A program made the position numbers and the translations under genes. A DNA stretch of 40,578 bases from Macrostomum lignano (taxonomy: Eukaryota). The DNA is taken from NCBI GenBank assembly GCA_002269645.1, contig NIVC01004610.1, positions 1-40,578 on the forward strand, in the 5' to 3' direction. This document shows, one piece after another, positions 2,852 through 31,200 of this stretch; position 1 is the first letter of the stretch; the number at the start of each line of letters is the position of its first letter. The notes under the pieces were generated by a model. It searched no databases and had not been told where the DNA came from. It worked only from the letters and a program-made list of their open reading frames with translations.

Positions 2852-5800
2852 TCAGATGGCGCGCTTCAAAGCTTGGGCGCGAACAAAAGCCGCACCGCCG
2901 GCAGAGTCCGGGGCGCCGGCGTCAGCCAGCAGACAGTCGACGTAGCGCCGAGTCTTCGCCTGTCCCCGCCGGTAGGGTGCCTGCAACGTAAGTAGCAGCA
3001 CCTCCTGCACCGGCTCCGGACAGTAGGCCTCGGCGCGGATGACGTGGCCTGCCAGCTGGAGTCGCCGACGGCGCAGCAGATCGCTAGGACGGGCCAGGCC
3101 GGCGCGATGATAGAGCGCCGTGTTGGTGACTCGCTCGTTGCCGATCTTGAAGGCGGCGCGCAGCAGGCCAGCGTGCGCCGCGTCGACTTGAGCCTCGAGC
3201 GAGTCTGTCAGCGTCCAGGTCTCGGCGTTGTATAACAGGACGGTCTCGATCACCGCCTGGAACAGCGCCGCCCTCTGGCGGTCCGGTAGGGCCTCGGACT
3301 GCAGGACTGACCTTATAGAACGAAAGGCAGCCCAAGCAAGTCCTCGGCGACGCCGCAGATCCTCGCGGACGTCGGGAACCAGACCGCCGAGGTAGACGAA
3401 CTGCTGACATCTTGGAAGCTCACTCGCCTGTCCGTCAGCGCCTCGGCAGAAGATTGCAGCCTCGGTGTCGTCCGGCACGCATAGCACGACGGTCTTCTGC
3501 GTGTTGACCACCAGGCCGACGCTCGCCGCAACGGCAACCAGCCTATCCAGCTGTCGTTGGGCGCCCTCGACGGTCGAGGACAGCAGGGCGAGGTCATCGG
3601 CGTAGCCAAGCACGCTGAGCCGTCTCTCCGGTTGGCGTCGACCCACGCGTCGCCGCAGCAGGAAGCCGTCGTCGTTGGAAGGCAGAGCAGTCCGTAGCAC
3701 CCAGTCAAGCACCAGAATAAATAGGAACGGCGCTAGCGTATCTCCCTGGAGCACCCCGGAGGATGTCTCGAAGAAATCCGATAGGCCGTCCGGTGTTGAG
3801 ACAGCAGCCGTCGTGCCGTGGTACAGCGCCATGACAGCAGAAATCAGCAGCTCTGGCACGTTGTACGCACGGAGCACCTCTGGGAGCGCGTCCCTCACGA
3901 CCGAGTCGAAAGCCTTCCTGAAATCGACGAAGATCAGGATCAGGGTCAACTGGCGGATGCGCGCCTCCTCGATGACTCGTCGAAGAGCCAGGATCTGCGT
4001 CACTGTGCCGCGATGGGGCCGGAATCCGTTCTGCTCAGGTCGCAGGTACGGGTCCAGCACAGGCTGTAACCGCGATAGCAGCATGCGGTTGAACAGCTTC
4101 GCGGCGCAGGACTGTAGGCAGATGCCTCGATGCTCCTCGAGCTTGGTGGTGCCCGGCTTCTTTGGAATGGCGACGATGTGCGCCGTGGTCCATTCGTTTG
4201 GCGCCACCTCACCGAAAAGCACGCGGTTCATCACTCTGGCGACCTCAGTGGCCACGCAGTGGATCCGCAGCGCCTCGGTGGGCACCTCGTCCGGACCAAG
4301 CGCTTTGCCGCCTGGCGACTGCCGAGCGAACTTCACAACGTCGGCTGTGCTGACTGGGGCAACATTGAAGCTCTCCTCCGCCGGCAACGGCGTCTCCGGC
4401 GGCAGCCTCAGATTTTCTGGAAGCGGAGGGGGCGGCGCGTTGACAATGGCGGCGAAGAACTCGCGCAGCTCGTTCCTGCGCTCATCCGGAGTGTCGCCTG
4501 CCAGGTTGAGCGCGATGCGCCGCTTTCGCCCCGTCAGAGTGTTGATGGCGGACCAGGCCACGCGCCCTCTGGCATCGGGCCCTGCGGCAGAGACGGCTTG
4601 GATGGCGTCATCGACAGCGGACTGCTGCCGCTGCAGGTAGACAGCCGCCAGAGCCTCCTCCGCCTCGCGAGTTGGCCGCCCACTCAGTCGGAGCCTCTCC
4701 AGATCTTCCCTCGCTTCGTCGATCGCGGGGTCGTCCTGCCAGACCGGCTGCCCGCGCTGGGCCGGTCGCATCAGCGGGACTGCTTGCTCCGCAGCGGCTC
4801 GAACTGCAGCGCTCACCTCCGCGTACTCGGCTCCTCCACGCTTGTCGCCCAGCGCAGTGACAAAGGCACCGGCAAAGCGACGTCGCGTCTCGGCGTCCCT
4901 GAGCGCGCGGTAGTAGCGCCGCGGTGGCCGCTTTGGCGGACGGTAGAGCGGGTCCCGAAGCCGAAGGTCGCAGATGAGCAGCCGATGGTCGGACCGCAGA
5001 GCCAGCGGCGTAATGGTGTGGCAGTTGGTGACGCGGCGGCGCTCACGAAAGCGCACAAGCACGTGGTCGAGCTGTGCCAGCCTCCGCGTAGCGTTCCGGC
5101 CGCGCGCGTTCCGCCGCCTCCGCTTGCAGCCCACGAAGGTCGCGAGCCTGCCCGGTGACTTGCGGAATCTGGTGTTGGCCGACACCATGTCCTGTCTCTC
5201 CAGGAAGTCCTCTAGCGCTCCGGTGTTGCCGTTCTCGCGCGCTGTCACAAACAGCGATCGCTCGGACCTACGCAGAACTGCGTTCAGGTCTCCGAGAATG
5301 ACCACTGTGTCACGTTGCGCCATCTCCTCCACCCGCACCGAGAGTTGCTCGAAGAAGGCCTGAGCCTCATCGGAGCGGGTAGCAGGCGGCGCATACGCGC
5401 AGAACAGGCGGGTGTTCCGGCCGCGAAGCCGGACGTCGACCCGAAGCAGCCGAGAAGACAGGGAGATGCAGCGACAGCTCTGCTGCAGCCTCGGTCCGAT
5501 CAGCGCTCCAACTCCTCCACGGCCTCGCTCATCCGCTGAGGTGTACCAGAGTGTCCAACCGGCGCCCAGGTCCTCACAGTGAAGTCCGGGGTCGGCTCTG
5601 ATAGACACCTCCTGTAGTGCGATGACATCACAGCTGAGGTCGAGCGCTAGCCTCGCCAGCAGCCCTCTCCGCCATGTGGCCTTGAGAGTGCGGCAGTTCA
5701 GCGTCCCGACCCGAAGCGTGCCCTCTGGTACGGCTGGGGCTCGATGCTGGTGAGCCTCATGGTCCCCGGCGCCACCCGGAAGATCCAATTGGGCCAGCGC

Positions 5801-5968
5801 AGCAGCAGCTCGGCGGGCGGCGCCACGTTGCCGACCTCGCCAGTTTCGCTCGCGACGGCGTTCAACTCGCCGACGCGCGCTCCGCTGCCCTCGCTTGGTC
5901 CTGCCGCATTTGGCCGCCGCAGCAGTTAAGCGCGGCTCTCCACTCTCACCACGAGGAGGTAGCGGCAT
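2852..5968 (-). CDS. APE endonuclease + reverse transcriptase polyprotein (1038 aa)
   Basis: APE motifs GTLNCRTL, IALQEV, YAP, ILGDLNA, LDHVLV, SDHRLL; RT motifs GPDEVP, QNGFRPHRGT, VDFRKAFDSV, GVLQGDTLAPFLF, YADD. Confidence 0.95.
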   Translation of the reverse strand: MPLPPRGESGEPRLTAAAAKCGRTKRGQRSARRRVERRRERNWRGRQRGAARRAAAALAQLDLPGGAGDHEAHQHRAPAVPEGTLRVGTLNCRTLKATWRRGLLARLALDLSCDVIALQEVSIRADPGLHCEDLGAGWTLWYTSADERGRGGVGALIGPRLQQSCRCISLSSRLLRVDVRLRGRNTRLFCAYAPPATRSDEAQAFFEQLSVRVEEMAQRDTVVILGDLNAVLRRSERSLFVTARENGNTGALEDFLERQDMVSANTRFRKSPGRLATFVGCKRRRRNARGRNATRRLAQLDHVLVRFRERRRVTNCHTITPLALRSDHRLLICDLRLRDPLYRPPKRPPRRYYRALRDAETRRRFAGAFVTALGDKRGGAEYAEVSAAVRAAAEQAVPLMRPAQRGQPVWQDDPAIDEAREDLERLRLSGRPTREAEEALAAVYLQRQQSAVDDAIQAVSAAGPDARGRVAWSAINTLTGRKRRIALNLAGDTPDERRNELREFFAAIVNAPPPPLPENLRLPPETPLPAEESFNVAPVSTADVVKFARQSPGGKALGPDEVPTEALRIHCVATEVARVMNRVLFGEVAPNEWTTAHIVAIPKKPGTTKLEEHRGICLQSCAAKLFNRMLLSRLQPVLDPYLRPEQNGFRPHRGTVTQILALRRVIEEARIRQLTLILIFVDFRKAFDSVVRDALPEVLRAYNVPELLISAVMALYHGTTAAVSTPDGLSDFFETSSGVLQGDTLAPFLFILVLDWVLRTALPSNDDGFLLRRRVGRRQPERRLSVLGYADDLALLSSTVEGAQRQLDRLVAVAASVGLVVNTQKTVVLCVPDDTEAAIFCRGADGQASELPRCQQFVYLGGLVPDVREDLRRRRGLAWAAFRSIRSVLQSEALPDRQRAALFQAVIETVLLYNAETWTLTDSLEAQVDAAHAGLLRAAFKIGNERVTNTALYHRAGLARPSDLLRRRRLQLAGHVIRAEAYCPEPVQEVLLLTLQAPYRRGQAKTRRYVDCLLADAGAPDSAGGAAFVRAQALKRAI

Positions 5969-5984
5969 TTATCTGCACCGTGGT

Positions 5985-6063: not shown

Positions 6064-6317
6064 AATTATCACTTAAAATGTAAGCATACAGTACATATAG
6101 AAATTAAGAAATTTCATTTCATCTCCAAGGTGCATGCATCAGCGCGGAAGGATTTATTTGGCTTGCAGGTTAAATTCTTCCAGAAATTTGCCCTTAAGTT
6201 TGCGCTTCAGACTTGACTGTGGATGCGAGAAGAATTTTTTGCTTGCTTTTACGTACATGCATATTACGCCAACGCTGATGCCTGTACAATGTACATGTAA
6301 CTAAATTGCATTGCACT

Positions 6318-6853
6318 AGAGGCGCCAGCACCAGAGGCGCCAGCACCAGAGGCGCCAGCACCAGAGGCGCCAGCACCAGAGGCGCCAGCACCAGAGGCGC
6401 CAGCACCAGAGGCGCCAGCACCAGAGGCGCCAGCACCAGAGGCGCCAGCACCAGAGGCGCCAGCACCAGAGGCGCCAGCACCAGAGGCGCCAGCACCAGA
6501 GGCGCCAGCACCAGAGGCGCCAGCACCAGAGGCGCCAGCACCAGAGGCGCCAGCACCAGAGGCGCCAGCACCAGAGGCGCCAGCACCAGAGGCGCCAGCA
6601 CCAGAGGCGCCAGCACCAGAGGCGCCAGCACCAGAGGCGCCAGCACCAGAGGCGCCAGCACCAGAGGCGCCAGCACCAGAGGCGCCAGCACCAGAGGCGC
6701 CAGCACCAGAGGCGCCAGCACCAGAGGCGCCAGCACCAGAGGCGCCAGCACCAGAGGCGCCAGCACCAGAGGCGCCAGCACCAGAGGCGCCAGCACCAGA
6801 GGCGCCAGCACCAGAGGCGCCAGCACCAGAGGCGCCAGCACCAGAGGCGCCAG
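6318..6853. repeat. 15-bp minisatellite (AGAGGCGCCAGCACC) x ~36
   Basis: Homogeneous tandem array starting ~20 bp past the stop codon of the Ank-cGLR gene. Confidence 0.95.
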
Positions 6854-6872
6854 TGATATGTGATACGTGAAA

Positions 6873-7292
6873 CTAATTGAGAAAAACAGTTTGCATCGAT
6901 AGGTTTCTTACCGATGTACTTATCACGCCAGCCAACTTGCAGTGCACTGTTCTCGACTGCACCAGCGTATCCTTGTGCTCGATAACCAATCGGACTAGCA
7001 GATCTTCACGGTCCTCTCGCGCCTTGCAATGCTCAATTAACAAGTCAATCTCGCTAGCGTCCATCTCAGCGTCCAGCATGTCCGTGAACCAGCCGCGAAT
7101 GCGTTTCTCTTGATTTTCGTCCGGCACTTCTTCGGACAGGCCACAGTCGCTCAGCAGCTGCAGATAGAGACTCTTGGCTAGAGCGTCGAAGTTTGCAGCG
7201 TAGAAGTCGTCGTACCGGAGCAGACGCCTCGGAAACTGGATGACGCCAGTTGGCAAAAAGTCAAATCGGAACGGCAGGGCGTGTGGTGCTTC
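6873..7292 (-). CDS. Ank-cGLR putative last exon
   Basis: Acceptor TTTCATCACAG|GAA (phase 0) into ORF 6873..7331; protein-like composition. Less certain than the other exons. Confidence 0.6.
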   Translation of the reverse strand, partial: EAPHALPFRFDFLPTGVIQFPRRLLRYDDFYAANFDALAKSLYLQLLSDCGLSEEVPDENQEKRIRGWFTDMLDAEMDASEIDLLIEHCKAREDREDLLVRLVIEHKDTLVQSRTVHCKLAGVISTSVRNLSMQTVFLN

Positions 7293-10200
7293 CTGTGATG
7301 AAATATTGGTTTTGATGGTGTTGAGCATCAACCATGTAGCGCATCAACTCACTGTACGGCACTGAACTACTCTGTAAGGCCCTGTTTGGACTGAACCGCT
7401 GGGACGGCTGGGCGGTCACCATGGCGCTCACCATAGCGCTCACCAGGCTATTGCTGCTTCGCTAGGCATCGCTACCTCCAGGGAAAATCCTTAGTGAGGA
7501 ATGAGGAAATGCCCTTTTTACCTCCCCGGTGCTGAGAATGTCGAGCACAATTCTTCCGTGAATGCCCTGCCATTAGCTCGGCCCAAAACCGGATCTCTCC
7601 GACGCGTTCAGATCAAAGAATTTCTGCCAGCACCAGCACTGCGGACACAGGACCTACCGGATCTTCCCGCGCGACACCACAGCACCAGCTTCAAGTTGTT
7701 ACCATGCAGGGGTTGGCGGAATAGGCGTCAACCACCCCGCTGCTCATACGAGCGTAGCCCCTGCAGCTACGAGTATGTAAGATGAAGCATTTACTCTAGC
7801 TCGAAAAATAGCCTTGAACGTTTTATGGCCTAATCTCAATAATGACATGTCAATAAGGCATGTAGCTTTGTAGCATGTAGCATGTAGCATGTAGCTTTGT
7901 AGTAATAAGGCATGTAGCATGTAGCTTTCCCTCTTAAGCGTACATGTAAAAAACAATTTCAAGATTAATTCGTGACTACTTAGGCTCTAAACAATGAATG
8001 GTACACTGAATGGCAACTAAAATTTTGCTTGAAATTAATCACCTGGACAAAGCAGAACCGCCACGCCGAGTCATTTTTTAGCAGACAGTGCTGCACAGAC
8101 GATTCGCTGTGCATGCTAAAGCTGCTGTAGTGCAGAGGAATGCCACGCAGCGGCCGATGACCAGATAGAAGCAGCTGAGACAGTTTCTGCAGCGCCTCGC
8201 CTGGCTGATTGAATCGCATATAGGCCAGGGCGGCGAGGCATTCGCGCGTCGTGCGAGCATAGTCAGGCAGTTGCTGGATGTCGTTCAGTAGCGCGTTCAA
8301 ATTTATCCGACAGTGGACTCCAGCCCCGACAGATAATTCGCGAAGGAAATGCCGCACACGCTCGTGCAGCTCGTGGTACTTCGGCTGGGCGGTAGGCTTA
8401 GATTGTGGCGGCTTCTGTCGGGCGGAGTCCTTAGAGCCGAGAATCTGTTTAATCTGCTTACTGCGAGGTAGCAGCATAAACGGATGATAATCTAGTGCCG
8501 CGTTGGGCCTCAGCGGCTGCAAGTGACCTAAAAACTCAGTGAGAACTTGGTCAAGGCTATTCCTGACATCTAGAACCGCTCTCAGAGTAGGTCGCTTGTC
8601 ATCTGCGCTGCTCGGTAAATTGTTCGACCGCTTCAGGTACAGTGGTGAATCGTTGAAGAAGAAACTATGCATGCCGATTCCAGGACCAGTACGTCGCAGG
8701 TCCTCAGCTAGCTTGTCCAACGCCTCAGCCGTTAGTTCCGGAAGTCGTTCCGGTCGCCATTGGTCCGGCGGTGTCTCCCGCAACATGCGAAATGCGAGAG
8801 TCTTGGCGTGGAATGATTTTAATTGTCCGCCACGTTTGTTGATGACCCGTTTGAATAGGTACTTCAGAATTGTGTACAGTTGACCCTGCATAAAGTACAG
8901 AGATTAACTGCCTAATTTCAGGAATTTAGAGAGCATAACTTTATGCACTGTTAGACAGAACATGTACTTTAATTTTTACCTGTACATCGGTAAAGCTGCG
9001 TACTAACAACAGTTCCAACCATTTAGTGCTGATCCGCAACTGCTTGCCTTCCATATCCGGTAGGGATGCACCAACAAGTGGACAAGCGTTGGGCAGCTCT
9101 GTCGCTTCTCTGAGCTGTTTAAGTAGCTGGGGAGATAGGTAGCCTGGAGATTCAAAAATGTCTACTTTGGGATAGGCGCAACAGCAGTACATCAGAGCCA
9201 TGTCCATCGCGGGACGCCCCAGACAGCCGTATTGGGTGCGTGCCGGATGAGCCGCTGCAATGATAATTAACATTTCTTCTAAGGTATTTAATAATGTATA
9301 TACTTGCTGTTAATTTTGGTTTAAGTATTCAAAAGTACAAGCTGAACTTTAGTTCAGAAAATTATAGAGCAACTCACCGTAGCCAGAAAACCAAACGTGC
9401 CCCTTTTCGTACTTAAGAGTTGTCTTATCCTCGTTTTCAGTGTTTGCCGCTAACTCATCAGCCCTTTCGTCGCTAGTTTCAGCAGCTGATTTGTTAATGC
9501 TCTTCACACCGACATCACTGTTGCATTGGCACTTTCCCGATAAATGATACAACCGATCGTCCACGTATTCCGATATGTCGATATCCGAGTCTTCGTCCAC
9601 TCGACCACCCAGTCGACAAACTGAGCTGCCCCAGCCTTCGGCGAAGCTGCCGCACAGATGCAACCGCTTGGACGATTCATTATTTGAATAGTTACTTATG
9701 AGTCCTTGCAAGTGATCGGCAACGGCAGCTTGTAGCGAGGCTCGACCATAAACGAATCCAGAATCGACCAGAGCTTTGTGAAGGCGAAGACCGCTTTGTA
9801 AAGTAGAATTTTGGATGCAGAATAAAATTTATTATTGAAGTGATTCATGTAGTTTATCATGTGGCTAGATAGAAAAGAGGTTGTAAATACACATATAAAC
9901 AATTAAATGCGTCAACGCATTTGATAAGATACGAGCGTTGAAATCTTGTATCAAGATATGTACATGTGTGACGGTGTCCCTTCGGTCGTTATTATATTTG
10001 GGGGTTAATCACTTTCTGTAATCATTCGGGACATCTATTAAAGTGTAATTTAACATCTGCTCACGCTGCTTAAGAAAGGTTTGTAAGAGTAGCGTAGGAA
10101 ATTGGCTGACATTTGTTTTACCATTTAAGTTTTGCAACTATACGAGCTATAAACATTGAATTAGAACTCAAATTGCATTAACCTGAGTCATTTAGGCTTC

Positions 10201-11841
10201 AAGTGCTACAGCCCTACGATCGCTGGAAGTTCAGATAGTCACATTTAGCGTTAACTTCCCAAGTCATTCTTGCCTATGCGTTGGCTTTGTTATTTCGGTA
10301 TTCGTCACACATGTACTATACACAATTCTAAACATTGCTCTTACTTGACTTTGGTGCCAGAAACGGATGTGAGTTGCTTTGGTTGAGATATTCTGTCTAT
10401 TGGGTCGCCGTTATTTGACGGGTAATCGTCTGCTTCTTGAAAGCATTTCAATAAGGGTGCCATGTAGCTGCTGGGAAAGTCGAAGCAATGTTTAACAAGT
10501 CGTTGCGCGCAATCCATGTGCTGGAACAGGACAGCTACGTCTAGCGACGTCAGCTGATGCCGATGCTCTATTTGCAAAGGATCTGCCCCTTCCGACAGCA
10601 GTACACCGAGCGCTTCCGCGCGTCCGCACATTGCCGCCAGGTGGAGCGGCGTCCAGCTGTCTGCCAGTGGTGGAGCGACCATCGCTCCGGCTTTCAGCAG
10701 GCAACGCACGACTTCGGCGTCTCCAGTCCAAGCCGCGGCGTGCAACGGCGTCTAGCCACGGCGAGCTTTGGCCTGCACCGGAGCGTCAGTTTGGGCCAAT
10801 AGGACTTTAACAACGTCTAGTCGGCGAAGCCGACAGGCAACATGAAGCGGAGTCCAGCCGTCGTTGGACATTATAGATTGGGAGGCGCCATGCTCAAGTA
10901 GCAAGCGTACAACACCTAAATGGCCGCGGTGCGATGCGTAATGAAGCGGCGTAACTCCCTGAACGCTATCGCGAAGATTTACAGTGGCTCCAGCTTCTAT
11001 CAGCGCCTTAGCAGCGTTGCCATGACCGCTGTCTGCCGCGTGATGCAACGGTGACCAGCCCTTGGTATCCTGCAGGTCCAGATTGGTGCAAATGGACTTC
11101 TTGGCCAGTTGCGAGACCACCGACTCGTGACCGCGACGGGCTGCGGCGTGAATTGGTGCCTGAAATGTACTTTAAGATAAGGTACATGTATCAGGTACCT
11201 GCAAGTTATGGAAACTCACAATCAAAACTGACCCATCCTAGTAGATTGCGAATGTTGACGTCGATGTCTTCTGTTTTGAGTAAGATGCGCACTGGCTCCG
11301 GGAAGCCCCAGTGGGCTGCGACGTGCAGCGGGGTAGACTGTCGATCATCCACCGCACTGACCGTAGCTCCGCCGGACTTCAAGAGTTCACTAACCAGATC
11401 GGCTTTGTTTTTCTTGCATGCTGCGTGTAGCGGAGTTCGACCATCTCGATTTGACAAGTCCACGATTGCGCCAGACTTCAGCAACAGTTTTGCTGGAGTT
11501 AGCTGGCCTCTCAGAGCTGCAAGGTACAATGGAGTGGCTCCGTCCTTGTCGCGGGCGTTCACCGCGAAGGCTCTGTTGATTCCATCGCGTTGAAACAGTT
11601 CAAGCAGCTCCTTGACTGCTTCACTGTTGCCTAGTAGAGCTGCTTCGTGTAACGGCGTGCGATTATTGAAATCATTGCGACACTTCTGCAGCTGCCGAGG
11701 GTTTAACATAGGCAGAAGGTTTTTCAGCTGGCTAATTTGATTCTGTTGAATGGCTTTTAGTATGGCCTTACAGATGGACATCGAATGCAAAATGTCGTGC
11801 TTCATACTTTCGCGCCTTTTTTCAGAGCATTCTGCATTCAA
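6873..11841 (-). CDS. Ankyrin-repeat / Mab-21 (cGAS-like receptor) nucleotidyltransferase fusion gene, 6 exons, ~1125 aa, one in-frame TAG
   Basis: Model join(11841-11233, 11159-10345, 9793-9378, 9254-8980, 8885-8043, 7292-6873); all introns GT-AG with matching phases 0,2,1,0,0. About 11 TPLH-type ankyrin repeats, then GSFAEG...DSDID, MDMALMYCCCAYP, LRISTKWLELLL and LKSFHAKTLAFRML...W motifs. Confidence 0.8.
7460..7750 (+). mobile_element. Second degenerate LINE 3' fragment, same family as 890-1420, intronic
   Basis: Clear nucleotide similarity to the reverse complement of ~960-1300 (e.g. CTCGGCCCAAAACC.GA.CTCTCCGACG; GCGCGACACC.CAGCAC). Confidence 0.65.
7856..7925. repeat. Imperfect 7-bp repeat (GCATGTA)n
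   Basis: Read directly, in the last intron of the Ank-cGLR gene. Confidence 0.7.
8043..8885 (-). CDS. Ank-cGLR exon 5 (Mab-21 C-terminal helical domain)
   Basis: Acceptor TTTATGCAG|GGT; YTILKYLF...LKSFHAKTLAF..W..L...HSFFF resembles the Mab-21 LKSYHLKT..W..HYF pattern; donor CAG|GTGATT. Confidence 0.8.
8980..9254 (-). CDS. Ank-cGLR exon 4
   Basis: Acceptor CATTGCAG|CG (phase 1); contains the candidate third catalytic Asp (AMDMALMYCC) and LRISTKWLELLL; donor CAG|GTAAAA. Confidence 0.8.
9378..9793 (-). CDS. Ank-cGLR exon 3 (nucleotidyltransferase core GS...DxD)
   Basis: Acceptor TCTACTTTACAAAG|C (phase 2, matching exon 2); LHKALVDSGF...HLCGSFAEGWG...DSDIDI; donor G|GTGAGT. Confidence 0.8.
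10345..11159 (-). CDS. Ank-cGLR exon 2 (ankyrin repeats 5-11; in-frame TAG at 10752-10754)
   Basis: Acceptor TTTCAG|GCA completes GW|APIHAAA. ORFs 10752..11120 and 10341..10745 are one frame split by RG*TPLHAAA. Donor AA|GTAAGA. Confidence 0.85.
11233..11841 (-). CDS. Ank-cGLR exon 1 (ankyrin repeats 1-4)
   Basis: RTPLHEAA, ATPLYLAA, RTPLHAAC, STPLHVAA; donor TGG|GTCAGT. Start codon uncertain. Confidence 0.85.
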
Positions 11842-13020: not shown

Positions 13021-14185
13021 CATGGCGTCGCCATGGATTTTATGGTGGGGGGACAAAGCCAAGAATTCAAGACGTACATGTACATGACTAAATTTTGGCA
13101 CTCATTGTGGCGCCGTAGGCACTCATTTTAGCGCCGCAGGCACTCATTTTAGCGCTGCAGGCACTCATTTTAGCGCCGCAGGCACTCATTTTAGCGCTGC
13201 AGGCACTCATTTTAGCGCCGCAGGCACTCATTTTAGCGACGCAGGCACTCATTTTAGCGACGCAGGCACTCATTTTAGCGCCGCAGGCATTCATTTTGGC
13301 GCCGCAGGCACTCATTGTGGCGCCGTAGGCACTCATTTTAGCGCCGCAGGCACTCATTTTAGCGCTGCAGGCACTCATTCTAGCGACGCAGGCACTCATT
13401 TTAGCGCCACAGGCACTCATTTTAGCGACGCAGGCACTCATTTTAGCGACGCAGGCACTCATTTTAGCGCCGCAGGCATTCATTTTGGCGCCGCAGGCAC
13501 TCATTGTGGCGCCGTAGGCACTCAGTTTAGCGCCGCAGGCACTCATTTTAGCGCTGCAGGCACTCATTCTAGCGACGCAGGCACTCATTTTAGCGCCACA
13601 GGCACTCATTCTAGCGACGCAGGCACTCATTTTAGCGCTGCAGGCACTCATTTTAGCGCCGCAGGCACTCATTTTAGCGACGCAGGCACTCATTTTAGCG
13701 ACGCAGGCACTCATTTTAGCGCCGCAGGCACTCATTTTAGCGACGCAGGCACTCATTTTAGCGCCGCAGGCATTCATTTTAGCGACGCAGGCACTCATTG
13801 TGGCGCCGTAGGCACTCAGTTTAGCGCCGCAGGCACTCATTTTAGCGCTGCAGGCACTCATTTTAGCGCTGCAGGCACTCATTCTAGCGACGCAGGCACT
13901 CATTTTAGCGCCACAGGCACTCATTCTAGCGACGCAGGCACTCATTTTGGCGCCGCAGGCATTTATTTTGGCGACGCAGGCACTCATTTTAGCGCCGCAA
14001 ACACTCATTTTAGCACCACAGGCACTCATTCAAGCACCGCAGGCACTCATTTTTGCACCGCAGGCATTCATTTTGGTGCCGCAGGCACTCATTTTGGCGC
14101 CGCAGGCATTCATTTTGGCGCCGCAGGCACTCATTTTGGCGCCTGGCGACATAACTCCCCTGCCCCCCCGGGTGGCGACCGCCTA
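13021..14185. mobile_element. Non-autonomous hAT-like DNA transposon filled by a minisatellite
   Basis: 8-bp direct repeat CCAGTCAC at 13013-13020 and 14186-14193; imperfect short TIRs CATGGCGTCGCCA / TGGCGACCGCCTA. An 8-bp TSD with YA..TR ends fits hAT. Confidence 0.7.
13097..14143. repeat. 21-bp minisatellite (GCAGGCACTCATTTTAGCGCC) x ~50 with variant units
   Basis: Read directly; variant units recur in blocks. Confidence 0.95.
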
Positions 14186-14851: not shown

Positions 14852-15908
14852 CTAAAATAAAGCAGAGACACCACCGGCAAAAGTCACAGCAGCCTCTGCT
14901 GCCTGGTGAAACTGGGGGAGATAACGCTGCACAGCCCCACTTCTCCAGTCACCAATGCGCATGATATCAGACACTGGGAGGCCTAACACAGACGCCCAGG
15001 TAGCTCCTCCTCGTCGCAGACTGTGCGCGGAGTAAGATCCTGGTCGAACGCCGGCTGCGGCAAACTTGTCACGGAGGAAGCAGTCCAGGTGCCTCCCAGT
15101 CAGCAGGCGCAAGCCGCCACTTCCGTCGGCGTAGGACCAGAGCGGTGACTCTGCTGACTTCAACCCGTTGGCGCGGATGTGTCGCTCAACTGCGCTCACC
15201 GGGCACAGGGCTGGCTGCCGCGCCAATCTCGGCAGCAGTACCCGGTGGCAGCGCTCCTTAAATTGGATGGTCTTGCCGAACTCGCAACGCAACACCAGAC
15301 CCTTCGGATGCTGAAGCAGGTCGGCGCGCCGGGAAAGGGCCGGGCCTTTGCCAGTTCGTGGCAGAAGGCTGGACTTTCGCAACATTCCCCACCAGCAGCA
15401 GATGGTCACAGCCCAGCAGGCCAGCTGCAGCCTGTCGGTCTCGTCAACTAGTCGTCGCATCTCCGTCAGCATTGTAGGCGACACAGGCCGCTTTCGGTTC
15501 ACGCGCAGTCCGAGGACCCGTTTAGCGCCGCGTAGAAGGAACCGCTGAAGCGTGCTTAGTCAGGTCCGGCGACGAGTTTATTCGAAACCCGAGCGACAGA
15601 GAGCTGCAGGCTGCCGAGATGCTGCTGTAGGCATGTAGCCGTGTGCCGATCAGACTGGCCAAATAGTTCAGCAGGCTCGTGACGTTGCAGGACACTGGAT
15701 CGCAGCCGGTATGGCGGCAGAACTCCTGCCACTCACGGATGTGTCTGTTGACTGCCTGCGCCGACCGCGGTGCGTACGCAGCGCTCAGCAGCGATGTGGC
15801 GCGGCTGCTAAGAGAGTCTGACGCAGCTGGGCGGCCTGAAAATGAAGAAAGGAGGCGGTCGCCAAGCCAAAAGCATGCTGATGCAGTGATTGTAGAATGC
15901 TTGGGCAA
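14852..15908 (-). CDS. Tyrosine recombinase, frameshifted near 15555
   Basis: Catalytic set R (GMLRKS), K (FGKTIQF), HxxR (AHSLRRGGAT), W (GDWRS), Y (VQRYL). The N-terminal part (15522..15908) is in a different frame from ...LQRFLLRGAKRVLG onward. Confidence 0.85.
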
Positions 15909-17431
15909 ATAAAACCATAACAGCGGAGTAAAAAGTTTAACAGCTGGCCTCGCTCGTGCAACCGCGAGGCAGCGTCAGCAAAAATTTGAAAATCACCAGG
16001 CACATGAAACGCGCGAATGCTCATTCCAAAACGCAAACACATCAGAGCCACCGTCTGCAGCAGCCGCTGCAACGCAGGACACTTTGAAACGCCTTTGTTG
16101 ATGATGTGACAGGCCGTCTGGTTGTCGCAGTAGATGCTCACCTTGCAACCTTTGAGCACATCCCTCCACCTCATCACTGCCAGCAGAGGGGCCAACCCTT
16201 CCTTGTAGTTGATCGGCAGGTCAGCGGAGACAGATCCTGCATCCTTCTCCCATTCCAGGTAGCACCAGTCAAACAGACCATCCTGGTCACGCAGCAGCGC
16301 CGCACCACCTCTGCCGCACGCATCGGATTCCATCGCCACAACTCGATTGTAGCTCGGCCACAGCTGCACCCATCGGCACGCCTGCAACGCCACCTTCCAC
16401 CAGTTCAGCTGACTGCGTAACCCGGAGTCGACCAGCGTTCGCTGTCCACGCCGTAAGATGTTGCACCGCTCAATCAGCTCACGCAAGAAGGTCCTTCCGC
16501 AACTGATGACCTGCGCTGCCCACCCCAACTTGCCAATGACCTGTTGGAGGGCCAGCTGACTAATCCTCACCTTGGCCGACTCGACACCAAGCAGGTTGAT
16601 CAACTTCCTTGCCTTCTCATCCGGCAGCTTCTTGATTTCTTCCACAGTGTCGAACTCAATTCCAAGGAATGACATCCGCTGCGCCGGCAGCTGGCACTTG
16701 GCCGGATTGACGGTGAATCCCAGCCGAGTCAGCAAGTCAATCAGATCGACGTAGAAGCACTGGCAGTTCTCCTGCGTCCCGCAGTAGGCAAAGTCGTCCA
16801 GGTAAGACTCGGTGTTGATGAAGCCTCTACGCACCATCATCAGATGAATCGCATTGCTCAGGCGTTGGAAGCACGTGACCGAGGCTGCCGCCCCGAACGG
16901 CAGGCGCGTATCAAACATGTAGGTGGGAGTGGCGCAGCCAGGAAATTTGAACTTGAGGCCGGTGTTGACGAAGTCTCCTGGGTGCACTCCACATGCGCGG
17001 TATGCTTCACTCAGGTCAACTTTAGTCATGTAGCAGCCTCTCGTTAACTTCCTTGCGAAGTTTTCAGCGCTTGAAAACCGCAACTTCTTATTGCTCTCCC
17101 AGTGCGCGTTCACCGACAGATTGTCCGGCCGACTGCAATCGTGAATTAGGCGTACCCGACCGTAATCATTCGGCAGGGCACCCAGCGCACTCACAATCCG
17201 AGGCCGCCACCCATCCGAGCACCGACGGTAGCGGTCAAGGCGAATTTCTCTCAGAATTTGCATTTGAACAGCTTCAGCGTACTCGTAAAGATTCACAGAC
17301 TCGTAGTTGCTGACCTCGACAGACTTCAGGTTTTCTCGCTGCACATTCGTAATCCGAAATCCCTCAGACACACCATCAAGAATAAACTGCTTTCTGTACA
17401 GCGGCAGATCAATCGACTCCAACTCTTCCAT
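15785..17431 (-). CDS. Reverse transcriptase + RNase H of the Ngaro element (548 aa; frame is open further upstream)
   Basis: RLIHDCS, KVDLSEAYR, DTRLPFG, YLDD; RNase H SDAC, INYKE, CDN, ADAASR. Confidence 0.93.
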   Translation of the reverse strand: MEELESIDLPLYRKQFILDGVSEGFRITNVQRENLKSVEVSNYESVNLYEYAEAVQMQILREIRLDRYRRCSDGWRPRIVSALGALPNDYGRVRLIHDCSRPDNLSVNAHWESNKKLRFSSAENFARKLTRGCYMTKVDLSEAYRACGVHPGDFVNTGLKFKFPGCATPTYMFDTRLPFGAAASVTCFQRLSNAIHLMMVRRGFINTESYLDDFAYCGTQENCQCFYVDLIDLLTRLGFTVNPAKCQLPAQRMSFLGIEFDTVEEIKKLPDEKARKLINLLGVESAKVRISQLALQQVIGKLGWAAQVISCGRTFLRELIERCNILRRGQRTLVDSGLRSQLNWWKVALQACRWVQLWPSYNRVVAMESDACGRGGAALLRDQDGLFDWCYLEWEKDAGSVSADLPINYKEGLAPLLAVMRWRDVLKGCKVSIYCDNQTACHIINKGVSKCPALQRLLQTVALMCLRFGMSIRAFHVPGDFQIFADAASRLHERGQLLNFLLRCYGFICPSILQSLHQHAFGLATASFLHFQAAQLRQTLLAAAPHRC

Positions 17432-22672: not shown

Positions 22673-23376
22673 AACAATCGTTTTCGTTATGTGCTACTTA
22701 AAACAATATATTACTTCTAGATGCCTCTAATCTTCAAAATGACGTCACTTTCCGAAAACTTATCAATTCTGTCAGCCATTTTAACCTTAGAAAGTTCAAT
22801 AAAACGGCTGCTAAGACTATCAACAATAAAATTATTGCGAACCCAACTCGCCGAACTTAGTCAATTCTGCGATCTAAATTGCATGCATGCATGCATACGC
22901 GACGAATTTCCGTCAGCTTAATCTGTCAACAAGCATCTGCTTGCGAAAAACTGCCGAGGTATGAGTAAACAAAAGAAATTGGACTCTCTATTTGACTCTG
23001 ACTTTGTATGAAATGCCTAATTGCTTATTATAGACACTACAATGGTGAGCTTGTCAAATGTTGACTCAACGTTGATCAAACAATGCCTGACAATGATAGC
23101 AACTGCAGCTATATGCCCACTGTGCAAGAAAGTCTTGCGTATACAGATGCTCAGTCCCTTATTACACTCACTCATATAATGCATTAGTATTATTAATACT
23201 GGAACACACATAAGTATATAACTAGATTATTGGTTGCCTCACTTTTCGTGTAAGCTTACTTAATTTATCGTAATTATGATGAATTGTAAGTTAAAGCTAA
23301 TTGTCGAAAGTGACGAAAATAACAAGCACAACAAAAGCAACAAAAGACGTAACCCAGAAAATTAAGATCAAACGGT

Positions 23377-23694
23377 CGTCAGATGAGGGTGCATCAGATG
23401 AGGGTGCGTCAGATGAGGGTGCGTCAGATGAGGGTGCGTCAGATGAGGGTGCGTCAGATGAGGGTGCGTCAGATGAGGGTGCGTCAGATGAGGGTGCGTC
23501 AGATGAGGGTGCGTCAGATGAGGGTGCGTCAGATGAGGGTGCGTCAGATGAGGGTGCGTCAGATGAGGGTGCGTCAGATGAGGGTGCGTCAGATGAGGGT
23601 GCGTCAGATGAGGGTGCGTCAGATGAGGGTGCGTCAGATGAGGGTGCGTCAGATGAGGGTGCGTCAGATGAGGGTGCGTCAGATGAGGGTGCGT
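23377..23694. repeat. 15-bp minisatellite (CGTCAGATGAGGGTG) x 21
   Basis: Read directly; possibly coding (see findings). Confidence 0.95.
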
Positions 23695-24315
23695 TCACGT
23701 ATCGACGAGTTCGCGCGTGGCCGTGCCTATATAGGCCGGTAGAAGTCAGAAACTACTATGGACGCATTTATAGCTTGATTTTGGAGGTGAGGTGGGTGTC
23801 AACCCTCCTCGCCTCTCATTGGCTGGCGCCCCGATCACTAGGTGATCGATACCCGTATCGATATCGGCGCTCGGCGCGCGCGCGCGCCGCAGGCGCCAAG
23901 CGCCGCAGGCGACCCTCCCCAGCCGCAGGCGCACCTACCGATATTAGATCCCAATAAATCAATCAGATCCCAAATCAATCAGATCCCAAATCAATCAGAT
24001 CCCAAGCGCACCCTCGCGAGCCGCAGGCGCCCATGCAGCAGGCGCCCCTCCCCGCCGCACGCGCCCTCCCCCGACATGTATGCCGCAGGCGCCCTCCCCA
24101 CCTCAGGCGCCCCTCCCGATATGTATGCGCACTCTCCCTATATGTACACCGATATGTATGCAGCAGGCGCCCGAGTGTACACTCTCCCGATATGTGTGTA
24201 CACCGATATGTAGTCATCGATACGGGCCTCTTCCCCTCTCTCACCTACATCTCAACTAGCGAAATCGAACCCAGGTCGCGCCCATACTAGGACACTACAC
24301 GGTTGTGGGGTATAG

Positions 24316-24730
24316 GGAGCGAGAAGTTTCAACCCTAACGCTGACGCAGCCCTGTACAATGAGCGTGTACGGGCAGAAAGGGGGGGTGGACAGAGAGACG
24401 GCCACTAGGTTATTATACTGTTGAAGCATAGAGAGCGAGAAGTTTCAACCCTAACGCTGACGCAGCCCTGTACAATGAGCGTGTACGAGCAGAAAGGGGG
24501 GGGTGGACAGAGAGACGGCCACTAGGTTATTATACTGTTGAAGCATAGAGAGCGAGAAGTTTTAACCCTGATGCTGACGCAGCCCTGTACAGTGAGAGTG
24601 TACGGGCAGAGAGGGGTGGGTGGACAGAGAACCAGCCACTAGGTTGTTATACTGTTGAAGCATAGGGAGCGAGAAGTTTTAACCCCGATGCTAACGCAGC
24701 CCTGTACACTGAACGTGTACGGGCAGAGGG
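24316..24730. repeat. ~115-bp tandem subrepeat x ~3.6 in the left arm (mirrored at ~31075-31490)
   Basis: GAGCGAGAAGTTT.AACCC...GCAGCCCTGTACA...CCACTAGGTT.TTATACTGTTGAAGCATAG recurs, diverging inward. Confidence 0.85.
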
Positions 24731-27700
24731 TGGGTGGAAAGAGATGTGAACAACACAGCCTGCTACAGGAGCCGGATAGAGAGGCGCATGCTAGGACAGA
24801 GAGGTAGTGTGAGTCACACACACCCCACAGAGAAAGCCATACAGAGGATAGAGAGCTCCCTCCCCAGTTGCAGGGGACAGAGAGGCAGGCAGGGTATGCA
24901 GGGGCATGCGAACCGTCAAGGGGCCACGCGAGGATAGAGTGGAGGAGCAGAGATGTGTTTGGACAGAGAGCCAGCCACGTGTGCGTAGTGTGAGGGAACA
25001 GAAACATATCGAGCAGGAGGGAGATGGGGAGCAAACGCGCAGGGTAAGGGAGCCACACAGGGCGGTACAGTGAGACACGGGCAGGGGTGGAGCCGTGCGT
25101 GGACAGAGCTGAACGGCACGGTCAGCTGCAGGAATAGGATGATAGAGAGGCGCGGAGGGGGACAGAGAGCAGTGTGCAGGGGTAGGCAGCCACGCAGGCT
25201 GGGGAACAGAGAGGCGCGTGTCAGCCAGTTGCAGCCCGGGACAGAGAAGTATGAAGGGGGGCCTGGGACAGAGTTGCGAGCAAGGCACAGAGAGAGGTAG
25301 GGTCTGGTAGCTATGTATAGACAGGGACCCACGCGAGGGCAGGACAGGGGAGTAGACATGCAAGTTGCATGCAAGGGCAGAGAGGTGTGCGCGGAGGGAG
25401 ACAGAGAGCAGTGTGTAGGGGTAGGTAACAGCAAACTTTAGTAGAGGCGCGCGGGGACGGAGAAACCAGTCTGAGCGTACAGAGACGTTACAGAGAGGTA
25501 CACAAACAGAGAATATTAAAAAGCACATGTGTAGGGACAGAGACGTGAGGGAGAATCCACCAAAACACGCTATGTATTATCAAAAGTTGGTTTTAGTGCC
25601 GCATATTTAATAGTGGGTAGTATAATAGTATGTACATAGTAGGTATAATAGTAGTAATAATAGTAAGCATATTAGCCCAAAAGGTAGGCTAAAACTGCTA
25701 AACAGTGTACACATCCTCATCATCCCACAAGCCCCCTCTCCCGCCAGACTCACTCTTCCAAACCTTCCTGTATTGCTGTATGTAAGGAAAATATAGTGTA
25801 AAAATTCAGATGTTAACCTCTAGACCGCTGAAATCAGGGCACACTAGAGGGGTTTCGAGGGTCTGCAAGCTCTATGTAAGCTGCTCGAGGAGGTTCCAGG
25901 GGTGTCGGGAGGGTTTCCATTATGATTTTGAAAAAAACTGGAGGCTTAAATACAACGTTTTATTCAAAAGCAGGTTATTTTAATGAAATAGCCAACACAA
26001 CCATCGTCGAGAGTAGATTTTTATAAGAAACTAGGTATTACAGCAAAATAAACCTTCAAACCATATAAAATTGAATAAAAAGCAGACATAATAAATGGCA
26101 AGTATTTTAATAGAAAAGTAAGCGAATTAGTCACCCGGGGTGTACATCCGGCAGGGTGGGCGTCCAGCGAGTGTACATCTGACAGGATGGGTGTTCAGCA
26201 AGTGTACATCTGACAGGGTGGGCGTTCAGCAAGTGTACCTTCAGCGTCGAGTAGGTGTACACCCGTCAGTGGGGAACTCCACCCCTCCCACCAATGTCGT
26301 GTGCACGCGGTTAGTGTTGGGGAACCCCGATGCTGACGCAGCCCTGTACACTGAGCAACCAGCCCCCCATGCGAGGGACAGAGAGCAGCCCCTGTAGCAG
26401 GAGGGGTAGTGCGTGGAGAGCCGCCATCCCCCCTGTAGCAGGGGACAGATAACAGGCGGCCCCTGTAGCAGTATGAGGCGGGGTACAGAGAGACACGGGG
26501 TGCTGGGACAGAGAGTGCGTGGAGGCACCCTGCGCCGCCCCGGCATGTCGCAGCACGCGGCGCGGGACAGAGAGGCAGTGTGTAAGTCACCCCGCGGAGG
26601 GACAGAGAGCTGCCCAGGCAGGAGGCGCGGGACAGAGAGGCGGTGAATCACACCCCACGGAGAGAGCCGTACAGCGAGCTTCCCCACCCGAGTCCGGTAA
26701 ATATTACAGAGTATTACGTGCACACGCCAGCCCTGAATACCAAGCCATACTAGTCTACCTGCAGTGCTCCCAGAGGGATCAGGGATGGTCAGGAGTTACA
26801 CACCAAGAATGCATTCATACAAAGAGTACACAACTCGAGCCCAGACACCAAGTCACAGTCTACTTACAGTAGAGATGGTAGATTAATAGCAAGATTATAT
26901 TACAATTAGACCTCCCTAGCACATGAGGAGTGAAATTCAATAATAATTGAATTCAATAATAATACAACATTTAGACGTAGTAATTTAATTACAAAATACC
27001 ACTAACACTGAGCCAACGAATTGTAGGTTACAAAGGAGTTGCCACTCATATGGAAAGCCAGTATAATGCAGGTGTATATTATTAAAACATAGACAAAAAC
27101 GATGCAGACGTATATACACACTATTGATTTTGTACATGTACATTTCGGCATATTACCACACATCGCGGGCACATATTATATATCGGGGGATAGGTTAAAA
27201 TACACACATCGTAGATGTAGAAGCAGACACAATGCAGGAAAATTATGATACGAGTGTACATATTAGTGCGTAAAAGTATCATATTATGACACCCTGTAGC
27301 ACATATTGACATAATGCAGGGGAAAATATTGACAGAAATAGTACACAATTGTAGAGGTAACAACCCGCCAACTAGTAAGGGCATCCAGCACTTGTTCAGG
27401 TTTTTATTATTTCGAGACGAGTGTCATGCCCCCGCAAGAGATCTTATCAGAAATTTGTTGAACTCCACTGCAACTCTCCCCAGAGCCTCCAAATGTGAGT
27501 TTTTAACCCAGGGTCGAGTACAAAGGACCCGCCCACTCTTAACCCCAAGGGGTGATCCTAGCGGAGACCAAGTACAGTGCGGACGGAGAGGGGTAACAGA
27601 AAGCGCTGCATCAGACCGCGGGGCTGCATTCCTCCCCCGAGGTAGGCGCGTCAGCTCCCACTCCTCATTTAACCATCAAGTAAACTAAAGAAGTCAAGCA

Positions 27701-28205: not shown

Positions 28206-31200
28206 TTACCCCTCTCCGTCCGCACTGTACTTGGTCTCCGCTAGGATCACCCCTTGGGGTTAAGAGTGGGCGGGTCCTTTGTACTCGACCCTGGGTTAAA
28301 AACTCACATTTGGAGGCTCTGGGGAGAGTTGCAGTGGAGTTCAACAAATTTCTGATAAGATCTCTTGCGGGGGCATGACACTCGTCTCGAAATAATAAAA
28401 ACCTGAACAAGTGCTGGATGCCCTTACTAGTTGGCGGGTTGTTACCTCTACAATTGTGTACTATTTCTGTCAATATTTTCCCCTGCATTATGTCAATATG
28501 TGCTACAGGGTGTCATAATATGATACTTTTACGCACTAATATGTACACTCGTATCATAATTTTCCTGCATTGTGTCTGCTTCTACATCTACGATGTGTGT
28601 ATTTTAACCTATCCCCCGATATATAATATGTGCCCGCGATGTGTGGTAATATGCCGAAATGTACATGTACAAAATCAATAGTGTGTATATACGTCTGCAT
28701 CGTTTTTGTCTATGTTTTAATAATATACACCTGCATTATACTGGCTTTCCATATGAGTGGCAACTCCTTTGTAACCTACAATTCGTTGGCTCAGTGTTAG
28801 TGGTATTTTGTAATTAAATTACTACGTCTAAATGTTGTATTATTATTGAATTCAATTATTATTGAATTTCACTCCTCATGTGCTAGGGAGGTCTAATTGT
28901 AATATAATCTTGCTATTAATCTACCATCTCTACTGTAAGTAGACTGTGACTTGGTGTCTGGGCTCGAGTTGTGTACTCTTTGTATGAATGCATTCTTGGT
29001 GTGTAACTCCTGACCATCCCTGATCCCTCTGGGAGCACTGCAGGTAGACTAGTATGGCTTGGTATTCAGGGCTGGCGTGTGCACGTAATACTCTGTAATA
29101 TTTACCGGACTCGGGTGGGGAAGCTCGCTGTACGGCTCTCTCCGTGGGGTGTGATTCACCGCCTCTCTGTCCCGCGCCTCCTGCCTGGGCAGCTCTCTGT
29201 CCCTCCGCGGGGGTGACTTACACACTGCCTCTCTGTCCCGCGCCGCGTGCTGCGACATGCCGGGGCGGCGCAGGGTGCCTCCACGCACTCTCTGTCCCAG
29301 CACCCCGTGTCTCTCTGTACCCCGCCTCATACTGCTACAGGGGGCCGCCTGTTATCTGTCCCCTGCTACAGGGGGGATGGCGGCTCTCCACGCACTACCC
29401 CTCCTGCTACAGGGGCTGCTCTCTGTCCCTCGCATGGGGGGCTGGTTGCTCAGTGTACAGGGCTGCGTCAGCATCGGGGTTCCCCAACACTAACCGCGTG
29501 CACACGACATTGGTGGGAGGGGTGGAGTTCCCCACTGACGGGTGTACACCTACTCGACGCTGAAGGTACACTTGCTGAACGCCCACCCTGTCAGATGTAC
29601 ACTTGCTGAACACCCATCCTGTCAGATGTACACTCGCTGGACGCCCACCCTGCCGGATGTACACCCCGGGTGACTAATTCGCTTACTTTTCTATTAAAAT
29701 ACTTGCCATTTATTATGTCTGCTTTTTATTCAATTTTATATGGTTTGAAGGTTTATTTTGCTGTAATACCTAGTTTCTTATAAAAATCTACTCTCGACGA
29801 TGGTTGTGTTGGCTATTTCATTAAAATAACCTGCTTTTGAATAAAACGTTGTATTTAAGCCTCCAGTTTTTTTCAAAATCATAATGGAAACCCTCCCGAC
29901 ACCCCTGGAACCTCCTCGAGCAGCTTACATAGAGCTTGCAGACCCTCGAAACCCCTCTAGTGTGCCCTGATTTCAGCGGTCTAGAGGTTAACATCTGAAT
30001 TTTTACACTATATTTTCCTTACATACAGCAATACAGGAAGGTTTGGAAGAGTGAGTCTGGCGGGAGAGGGGGCTTGTGGGATGATGAGGATGTGTACACT
30101 GTTTAGCAGTTTTAGCCTACCTTTTGGGCTAATATGCTTACTATTATTACTACTATTATACCTACTATGTACATACTATTATACTACCCACTATTAAATA
30201 TGCGGCACTAAAACCAACTTTTGATAATACATAGCGTGTTTTGGTGGATTCTCCCTCACGTCTCTGTCCCTACACATGTGCTTTTTAATATTCTCTGTTT
30301 GTGTACCTCTCTGTAACGTCTCTGTACGCTCAGACTGGTTTCTCCGTCCCGCGCGCCTCTACTAAAGTTTGCTGTTACCTACCCCTACACACTGCTCTCT
30401 GTCTCCCTCCGCGCACACCTCTCTGCCCTTGCATGCAACTTGCATGTCTACTCCCCTGTCCTGCCCTCGCGTGGGTCCCTGTCTATACATAGCTACCAGA
30501 CCCTACCTCTCTCTGTGCCTTGCTCGCAACTCTGTCCCAGGCCCCCCTTCATACTTCTCTGTCCCGGGCTGCAACTGGCTGACACGCGCCTCTCTGTTCC
30601 CCAGCCTGCGTGGCTGCCTACCCCTGCACACTGCTCTCTGTCCCCCTCCGCGCCTCTCTATCATCCTATTCCTGCAGCTGACCGTGCCGTTCAGCTCTGT
30701 CCACGCACGGCTCCACCCCTGCCCGTGTCTCACTGTACCGCCCTGTGTGGCTCCCTTACCCTGCGCGTTTGCTCCCCATCTCCCTCCTGCTCGATATGTT
30801 TCTGTTCCCTCACACTACGCACACGTGGCTGGCTCTCTGTCCAAACACATCTCTGCTCCTCCACTCTATCCTCGCGTGGCCCCTTGACGGTTCGCATGCC
30901 CCTGCATACCCTGCCTGCCTCTCTGTCCCCTGCAACTGGGGAGGGAGCTCTCTATCCTCTGTATGGCTTTCTCTGTGGGGTGTGTGTGACTCACACTACC
31001 TCTCTGTCCTAGCATGCGCCTCTCTATCCGGCTCCTGTAGCAGGCTGTGTTGTTCACATCTCTTTCCACCCACCCTCTGCCCGTACACGTTCAGTGTACA
31101 GGGCTGCGTTAGCATCGGGGTTAAAACTTCTCGCTCCCTATGCTTCAACAGTATAACAACCTAGTGGCTGGTTCTCTGTCCACCCACCCCTCTCTGCCCG

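Follow-up and report, generated by a model that had tools for sequence, protein, structure and literature searches.

On the minus strand of a Macrostomum lignano contig (NIVC01004610.1 of assembly GCA_002269645.1, positions 1 to 40,578; these 40,578 nucleotides (nt) are the whole stretch analysed, hereafter the window) lies a spliced gene, starting at position 11805, that joins an N-terminal array of ankyrin (ANK) repeats to a cGAS-like (Mab-21) nucleotidyltransferase (NTase) and a C-terminal helical domain. We think it likely that this locus, together with at least one near-identical copy, belongs to a three-module M. lignano family, and that the copy in the window is damaged. A TAG codon stands in frame within the ankyrin array, and most probably the window copy was damaged recently or is truncated at its N-terminus, rather than being an intact receptor with 11 repeats.

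The open reading frame (ORF) list of the minus strand from 11841 to 6873 shows three ankyrin-rich pieces (Pfam Ank E values of 1e-14 to 1e-30 for the three) followed by four more. A preliminary description of this DNA had proposed that these separate pieces are connected by five phase-compatible GT-AG introns, and our joining confirmed this structure (Table 1); introns 2 to 5 are reproduced by the GenBank protein PAA83814.1 (BOX15_Mlig026362g1, 822 amino acids (aa)), which reads ...SGTKVNGLRLHKAL..., ...FSGYAAHPAR..., ...TDVQGQLYT... and ...FCFVQEAPHALPF... across them as modelled. The junction singled out in that description, GTC AA/C GGT at 10345/9793 (slashes mark splice points), proved exact and in phase 2: codon 463 (Asn) is assembled from AA (10346-10345) and C (9793), and PAA83814.1 has TKV-N-GLRL at this point. 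Exon 1 matches Pfam Ank with E = 7e-30 and ends in the phase 0 donor GG/GTCAGT. The array comprises 10 canonical repeats plus one degenerate capping repeat, in agreement with the roughly 11 repeats anticipated. Both ends of the gene had been misplaced, since position 11841 carries TTG and the coding sequence starts at the ATG at 11805, and since the stop at 6875-6873 is a read-through of a sixth intron (donor at 6911) that the description had missed.

Transcript support comes from the sister copy. In its NTase part the window protein shows 100% identity to UniProt A0A1I8GZY0 (M. lignano, a 405-aa fragment named 'Mab-21 domain-containing protein'), which begins one codon past the predicted 9793 acceptor and whose 90% cluster includes PAA83814.1. 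The annotation behind PAA83814.1 (Mlig_3_7) was built from RNA sequencing (RNA-seq) and a de novo transcriptome with StringTie, TACO, TBONE and TransDecoder (PMC5730564). Its locus, NIVC01000405.1 (L001), aligns to window positions 12644-1 at 99.1-99.6% identity, and on this basis we regard the window locus as a sister copy of L001. Two such near-identical copies are in keeping with the M. lignano DV1 genome as a whole, in which duplicated blocks of at least 95% identity are reported to total 180 Mb (PMC5730564). PAA83814.1 carries Trp in place of the window TAG and takes its C-terminal end from the exon at 5972-5946. RNA-derived models of paralogues also hold both the ANK and the NTase modules, so the presence of the two in one transcript is supported by these together with the sister-copy model. 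Public models (405, 379, 155 and 822 aa) each cover only a fragment of the gene, and its N-terminal 287 codons are annotated nowhere, a gap that matters for genome annotation.

The cGAS-like fold that had been suggested for the NTase is borne out by structure prediction. An AlphaFold2 model of the A0A1I8GZY0 fragment (P0001, whose numbering is that of the 405-aa fragment), made with a 40-sequence family alignment, reached a predicted local distance difference test score (pLDDT) of 82.4 and a predicted template modelling score (pTM) of 0.84. With this model Foldseek returned from PDB only cGAS (human, mouse, pig) or oyster Cv-cGLR1 among the matches listed (50 of 50; E about 3e-8, probability 1.0, template modelling scores of 0.5-0.6). 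At the sequence level, single-sequence phmmer found no match in PDB and a family profile was required, which reached cGLR1 (3.2e-6), cGAS (8e-5) and MAB21L1 (0.032), in the C-lobe only.

The GS...DxD motif and a candidate third Asp, noted at the outset, are retained as G511-S512 (9651-9646), D533-I-D535 (9585-9577) and D619 (9204-9202), and they are conserved family-wide: at an overall identity of 35-40%, P0001 residues G48, S49, S69, D70 and D72 are invariant and D156 nearly so. The model has a β-strand at P0001 residues 44-47, a helix at 48-52, a strand from residue 70 and a strand at 154-163, and the catalytic Gly-Ser and Asp residues sit on the strand/helix/strand elements where they are expected. 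D533, D535 and D619 would be equivalent to cGAS E225, D227 and D319. A further set of His and Cys positions, invariant or nearly so in the family, falls in P0001 residues 83-92, 132, 164-167 and 196-197 (window exons 3-4), namely H83...C90 in 'YHLxGxCxC', H132, C164/Y166/P167 in 'LCCYPP' and C196-H197; these might form a metal site, in a location that differs from the zinc thumb of vertebrate cGAS.

Downstream of the NTase, the protein continues from residue ~862 to its end in a domain of ~260 aa that the preliminary description had missed. Modelled jointly with a conserved FHPF linker, it gave a confident fold (pLDDT 81.1, pTM 0.82) that is mainly helical with a small sheet. No Pfam family matched it and no PDB fold matched it significantly, the best being TPR-like Rap proteins at E 0.21; a word-indexed protein search with a profile of the domain returned one self-fragment only. 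The domain is kept across the M. lignano family.

When 1.84 billion representative proteins were searched by phmmer with the 405-aa fragment, 119 matches resulted, 77 of them below 1e-10. Ten of the strong matches were looked up, and all ten come from M. lignano; they are 700-1575 aa long (typically 900-1575), with N-terminal ANK arrays of up to 13 or more repeats ahead of the NTase, under the names 'ANK_REP_REGION domain-containing' or 'Mab-21-like HhH/H2TH-like domain-containing'. Locally built hidden Markov models place ANK upstream of the NTase in 45 representatives and the C-terminal domain directly after it in 58; many of the remaining representatives are fragments. Weak matches (E 1e-4 to 1e-8, C-lobe only) came from a sea anemone, a bivalve and others, and are genuine proteins of the Mab-21 plus Mab-21_C type, some bearing tetratricopeptide repeats (TPRs) at the C-terminus; the flatworm C-terminal domain was absent from all those examined. 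In word-indexed searches the NTase plus C-terminal query found the self-fragment P0001 only, and the ANK query found generic ankyrin proteins only, at 33-37% identity. The family is apparently large and lineage-specific, with the layout ANK array, cGAS-like NTase and C-terminal domain. Three M. lignano proteins of the ML2 annotation (P0002, P0003 and P0059) show a pair of NTase units or have an ANK array on either side; the predictor may have merged tandem genes here, or these may be true fusions of several cGAS-like receptors (cGLRs) of the sort mentioned by Li et al. 2023 (Cell; bioRxiv 10.1101/2023.02.22.529553).

The premature TAG (10754-10752, codon 327) occupies the x position of the G-x-TPLH motif in repeat 9, where five other repeats carry Trp (TGG) and where the sister copy also has TGG, one transition away from TAG. 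The frame is otherwise open, over ~326 codons upstream and ~780 downstream. No plausible intron takes the stop out; a tiny one that would excise it (GTGCAG...CTAG, ~30 nt) was considered and rejected: it would remove conserved ankyrin residues, and PAA83814.1 has Trp there. The proposal that the ankyrins are joined in frame to the NTase thus stands as regards the phases, compatible at all five introns, but not as regards the reading frame, which TAG closes, parting repeats 1-8 from the enzyme, so that ANK and NTase do not share one ORF in the window. Because of this codon the full-length fusion cannot be translated from the window copy as sequenced, which can give only a predicted 326-residue, ankyrin-only fragment. 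Beyond the stop the next available Met is Met351 (window 10682), and a restart there could yield a short-ANK enzyme with ~1.5 repeats, the NTase and the C-terminal domain.

The sister copy is damaged in this region too. At codon 258 it has TAG where the window has CAG, and at codons 158 and 168, both intact in the window, it has 1-bp deletions in short C runs. These lesions account for the start of PAA83814.1 at Met288, which is the next Met past the codon 258 stop. An uninterrupted frame from start to stop was therefore found at neither locus, the window one being closed by its own TAG. Ten coding substitutions separate the copies, 5 synonymous and 5 non-synonymous, two of the latter being nonsense changes and both of these C:G to T:A transitions. 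Nine of the ten fall in the ANK exons (9/1388 nt, 11805-10345) and one in the NTase plus C-terminal exons (1/1915 nt, 9793-6912), a ~12-fold difference per site (Fisher p = 0.0025); the ANK exons also diverge more than the introns (3/1591), with p = 0.078 in the same test. The divergence of the ANK exons could stem from selection that is relaxed or diversifying, or from gene conversion between the ankyrin repeats. From the pattern of lesions and substitutions we conclude that the ankyrin array is broken in both copies and that the enzyme and the C-terminal part are intact and nearly the same in the two.

The damage may reflect truncated isoforms, recent pseudogenisation or an assembly error. 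The gene could be intact and functional, making the full 11-repeat ANK-cGLR, with TAG a sequencing or assembly error or a variant of one copy; the TGG of the sister locus, the single transition needed, the open codons on either side of the stop and the abundance of duplicated blocks in the DV1 genome would all suit such a case. We nevertheless find it unlikely, given that long-read assemblies typically err by indels more than by substitutions, that the sister ANK region is broken too, by its own TAG and 1-bp deletions, with neither copy encoding the full array, and that residues 1-287 are matched by no database protein. Conversely, the whole locus may be a decaying pseudogene, a redundant duplicate that dates from the recent genome duplication and makes no functional product. 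The premature stops that both copies carry among their ankyrin repeats, the even split of synonymous and non-synonymous changes (nonsense included) and the insertions of transposable elements (TEs) and a minisatellite at the 3' end, where an alternative last exon enters a long interspersed nuclear element (LINE), make this a possibility to be taken seriously, if a doubtful one: the NTase and C-terminal exons differ at a single site in 1915 nt and keep both the catalytic residues and an open frame, and RNA-seq assembly recovered a spliced transcript of the sister copy.

Two further alternatives concern the protein itself. That the ANK and NTase exons are two adjacent genes, their fusion being a read-through or a prediction artefact, might be argued from the public MAKER fragment A0A1I8GZY0, which starts exactly at the NTase exon, and from six small, phase-2 compatible ATG...GT mini-exons within intron 2. 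Yet the NTase exon has no in-frame ATG ahead of the GS motif and meets in-frame stops 11-12 codons upstream of its acceptor. Trans-splicing of the M. lignano spliced leader (SL; 35 nt with a terminal ATG, PMC8629364) at 9793 was tried as a source of a start codon and discarded: the SL ATG opens only a 34-aa ORF in another frame, and the NTase frame runs through the SL without an ATG. The RNA-derived PAA83814.1 crosses the junction, dozens of paralogues share the ANK-NTase order, and the intron between the modules is in phase 2 in the three members examined (the window gene, P0007 (L002) and P0004 (L003)), the next intron, intron 3, also keeping its position and phase 1 in the paralogues examined. 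Two separate genes are, on these grounds, extremely improbable, and the original view of one spliced gene holds. Better founded, though still improbable, is the idea that the NTase is a non-catalytic scaffold of the Mab21L type acting only through protein-protein interaction. Pfam matches the C-lobe alone and weakly, MAB21L1 is among the family-profile matches, and many cGLRs were inactive in vitro in the screen of Li et al. 2023; on the other side, a family whose members are only ~35-40% identical keeps GS, DxD and the third Asp without change or nearly so, and the same source reports no predicted functional active site for Mab21L1/2/3.

The account of a damaged copy from a three-module cGLR family has several points that weigh against it. 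No database protein covers residues 1-287, and expression of exon 1 is a prediction. TAG may reflect an assembly error or variation in a single copy, and with the copies 99.6% identical RNA-seq reads cannot be attributed to one or the other. Enzymatic activity, ligand and expression of the window gene are predictions. The HMMER comparison put forward in the preliminary description succeeded with Ank profiles and gave a mixed outcome with Mab-21 ones: PF03281 (Mab-21 NTase) does not match the protein, and PF20266 (Mab-21_C) scores 19.7-22.0 bits against a gathering cut-off of 24.1, the 22.0 bits coming from the ORF piece at 7980-8891; two paralogues, P0017 and P0004, do exceed that cut-off (28.4 and 31.0 bits). 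The spacing from GS to DxD (20 residues) is longer than in the oyster cGLRs of Li et al. Table S3. Finally, the planarian S. mediterranea is without both cGAS and STING, and Table S5 of Li et al. 2023 omits M. lignano.

The 3' end is more elaborate than the five-intron structure implied. Beyond intron 6 there are two alternative terminal coding exons, both with an AG acceptor and in phase 0 (Table 1). The second of them (5972-5946) overlaps the start codon (5968) of a LINE, and one isoform therefore appears to end in TE-derived sequence. This LINE lies directly downstream of the gene, as an intact ORF of 1038 aa at 2852-5968 on the minus strand (Exo_endo_phos + RVT_1). Intron 6 also harbours a minisatellite of 36 15-nt units (GCACCAGAGGCGCCA; window 6313-6853; L001 5787-5842), which differs by 56 nt in length between the two gene copies; another insertion/deletion between them, of 32 nt, is located at window ~6064.

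Table 1. Coordinates of the exons, introns and premature stop of the ANK-NTase gene in the window.
Feature	Coordinates	Strand	Description
Exon 1	11233..11805	minus	ATG 11805-11803; ~47-aa N-terminal cap; ankyrin repeats 1-4 and start of repeat 5
Intron 1	11160..11232	minus	73 nt, GT-AG, phase 0; splice re-forms ankyrin motif LLGW/APIHAAARRGH
Exon 2	10345..11159	minus	Ankyrin repeats 5-11 and ~45-aa linker; covered by PAA83814.1 from Met288 on
In-frame TAG	10752..10754	minus	Codon 327, x of G-x-TPLH, ankyrin repeat 9
Intron 2	9794..10344	minus	551 nt, GT-AG, phase 2; boundary of ANK and NTase modules
Exon 3	9378..9793	minus	NTase N-terminal spine helix and N-lobe; G511-S512 9651-9646, D533-I-D535 9585-9577
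Intron 3	9255..9377	minus	123 nt, GT-AG, phase 1
Exon 4	8980..9254	minus	Remaining catalytic core; third acidic residue D619 at 9204-9202
Intron 4	8886..8979	minus	94 nt, GT-AG, phase 0
Exon 5	8043..8885	minus	Mab-21 C-lobe (HhH/H2TH-like) and first half of family-specific C-terminal domain
Intron 5	7293..8042	minus	750 nt, GT-AG, phase 0; splice re-forms family motif DSAWRFCF...FLP...FP...NFDAL
Exon 6	6912..7292	minus	C-terminal helical domain, second half
Intron 6	6217..6911	minus	Donor TCG/GTAAGA, phase 0
Terminal coding exon, variant A	6154..6216	minus	SSLKRKLKGKFLEEFNLQAK then stop; seen in P0143
Terminal coding exon, variant B	5946..5972	minus	INAATSSW then stop; used in PAA83814.1

Elsewhere in the window, an inverted repeat of ~3.9 kb (arms 23751-27596 and 28206-32053, essentially 100% complementary over four contiguous pairs, with a 609-nt spacer) may be a genuine palindromic duplication, or else an artefact of long-read assembly caused by a missed adapter. 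Minisatellites occupy 13097-14143 and 23297-23957, one with a 21-nt unit repeated 50 times and the other with ~15-nt units that encode DEGAS or SSDAP in open frames. A second retroelement on the minus strand (14852-17431) consists of a 548-aa ORF with RVT_1 followed by a 216-aa ORF without a Pfam match. The same strand carries a single-exon galactosyltransferase of 551 aa (32747-34402; PF01762, E = 1.5e-38) and, near the window end, a partial ORF (40053-40469) whose C-terminal tail resembles galactosyltransferase and suggests, by this resemblance, a tandem paralogue.

By extension from established cGLR biology, the enzyme of an intact family member would be held inactive until a ligand is recognised, and would then make a cyclic nucleotide second messenger by metal-dependent catalysis at D533, D535 and D619. 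The ankyrin array, and possibly the C-terminal domain, may serve in recognition of a ligand or partner, or in autoinhibition, and such recognition would replace the nucleic-acid-binding surface used by cGAS. To our knowledge, only a handful of animal cGLRs have known ligands, and what appended ANK or TPR modules do has yet to be studied. M. lignano is amenable to transgenesis, and with dozens of ANK-cGLR paralogues at hand the family, more than the damaged copy, therefore offers a practical system, one that could show if repeat modules turn cGLRs towards proteins or other ligands that are not nucleic acids, and which receptor takes up their signal in a flatworm. Rather unlikely, in our judgement, is the further step that this expanded three-module family, in a phylum whose better-studied members lost cGAS and STING, has a new input, a new downstream receptor or both, as it would if STING is lacking or if the ANK or C-terminal modules recognise ligands other than nucleic acids. 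In that case, the quicker divergence of the ANK exons and their recurrent breakage would be an arms-race type of sensor-module turnover. With its C-terminal domain and fast-changing ankyrin arrays, the family is in any case a more interesting object than the window copy.

Among known proteins, MAB21L1/2 share the fold family and a weak profile match (E 0.032) with the window NTase; they differ from it in the active site, a functional one not being predicted for Mab21L1/2/3 according to Li et al. 2023, whereas the catalytic residues are conserved in the window. Vertebrate cGAS and oyster Cv-cGLR1 (PDB 6ct9, 4k97, 8gjw, 8gjy) have in common with it the bilobal Mab-21/cGAS NTase fold, a homologous C-lobe sequence (profile E 3e-6 to 1e-4) and the GS, [DE]x[DE] and third acidic residue. 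Their identity to the window NTase is only 13-16%, however, and the latter has ~9 extra residues inserted on the way from GS to DxD, with a further insert, of low confidence, at P0001 residues 100-121, besides the ANK and C-terminal modules added in the flatworm protein. The mollusc TPR-cGLRs (for example Sinanodonta woodiana KAL3855470.1) are the nearest non-flatworm relatives found by sequence (E 1e-4 to 1e-8) and likewise place a helical module C-terminal to the cGLR core; theirs is a recognisable TPR and they have no ANK array, whereas the flatworm domain matches nothing in Pfam or PDB significantly.

The closest systems are the ANK-cGLRs of M. lignano itself. Li et al. 2023 surveyed ~3,000 cGLRs, of which 87% are stand-alone enzymes and some bear TPR or ankyrin modules (Fig. 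1C, S2A); the ANK-cGLRs described there include PAA86972.1, PAA45980.1, PAA68676.1 and PAA68216.1 of M. lignano and others of Stylophora pistillata. PAA proteins of M. lignano with Ank_2, PAA68216.1 among them, stand with the cGLRs in Table S2, and Table S3 has five cloned M. lignano NTase constructs, #89-93. PAA83814 was not found in the searched parts of these tables, nor did the passages used describe the C-terminal domain as a separate module. Our literature searches found no functional characterisation of any ANK-cGLR and no match for the locus tag. PAA68216.1 shares a 90% cluster with P0005, a match from our family search. The listed proteins agree with the window gene in carrying ankyrins N-terminal to a cGAS-like NTase in a single polypeptide, in species and in paralogue family, and the cloned constructs in the motifs GSFxEGWGxSL...SDxD and QGQ...K.L.K...LK.YH.K; what sets the window copy apart is the nonsense codon in its ANK array. 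The novelty that had been expected in architecture and lineage must be given up, because M. lignano ANK-cGLRs were already catalogued and cloned in that study. The window gene is real, its splice structure was correctly deduced, and it is of a kind, the ANK-cGLRs, already on record for the species.

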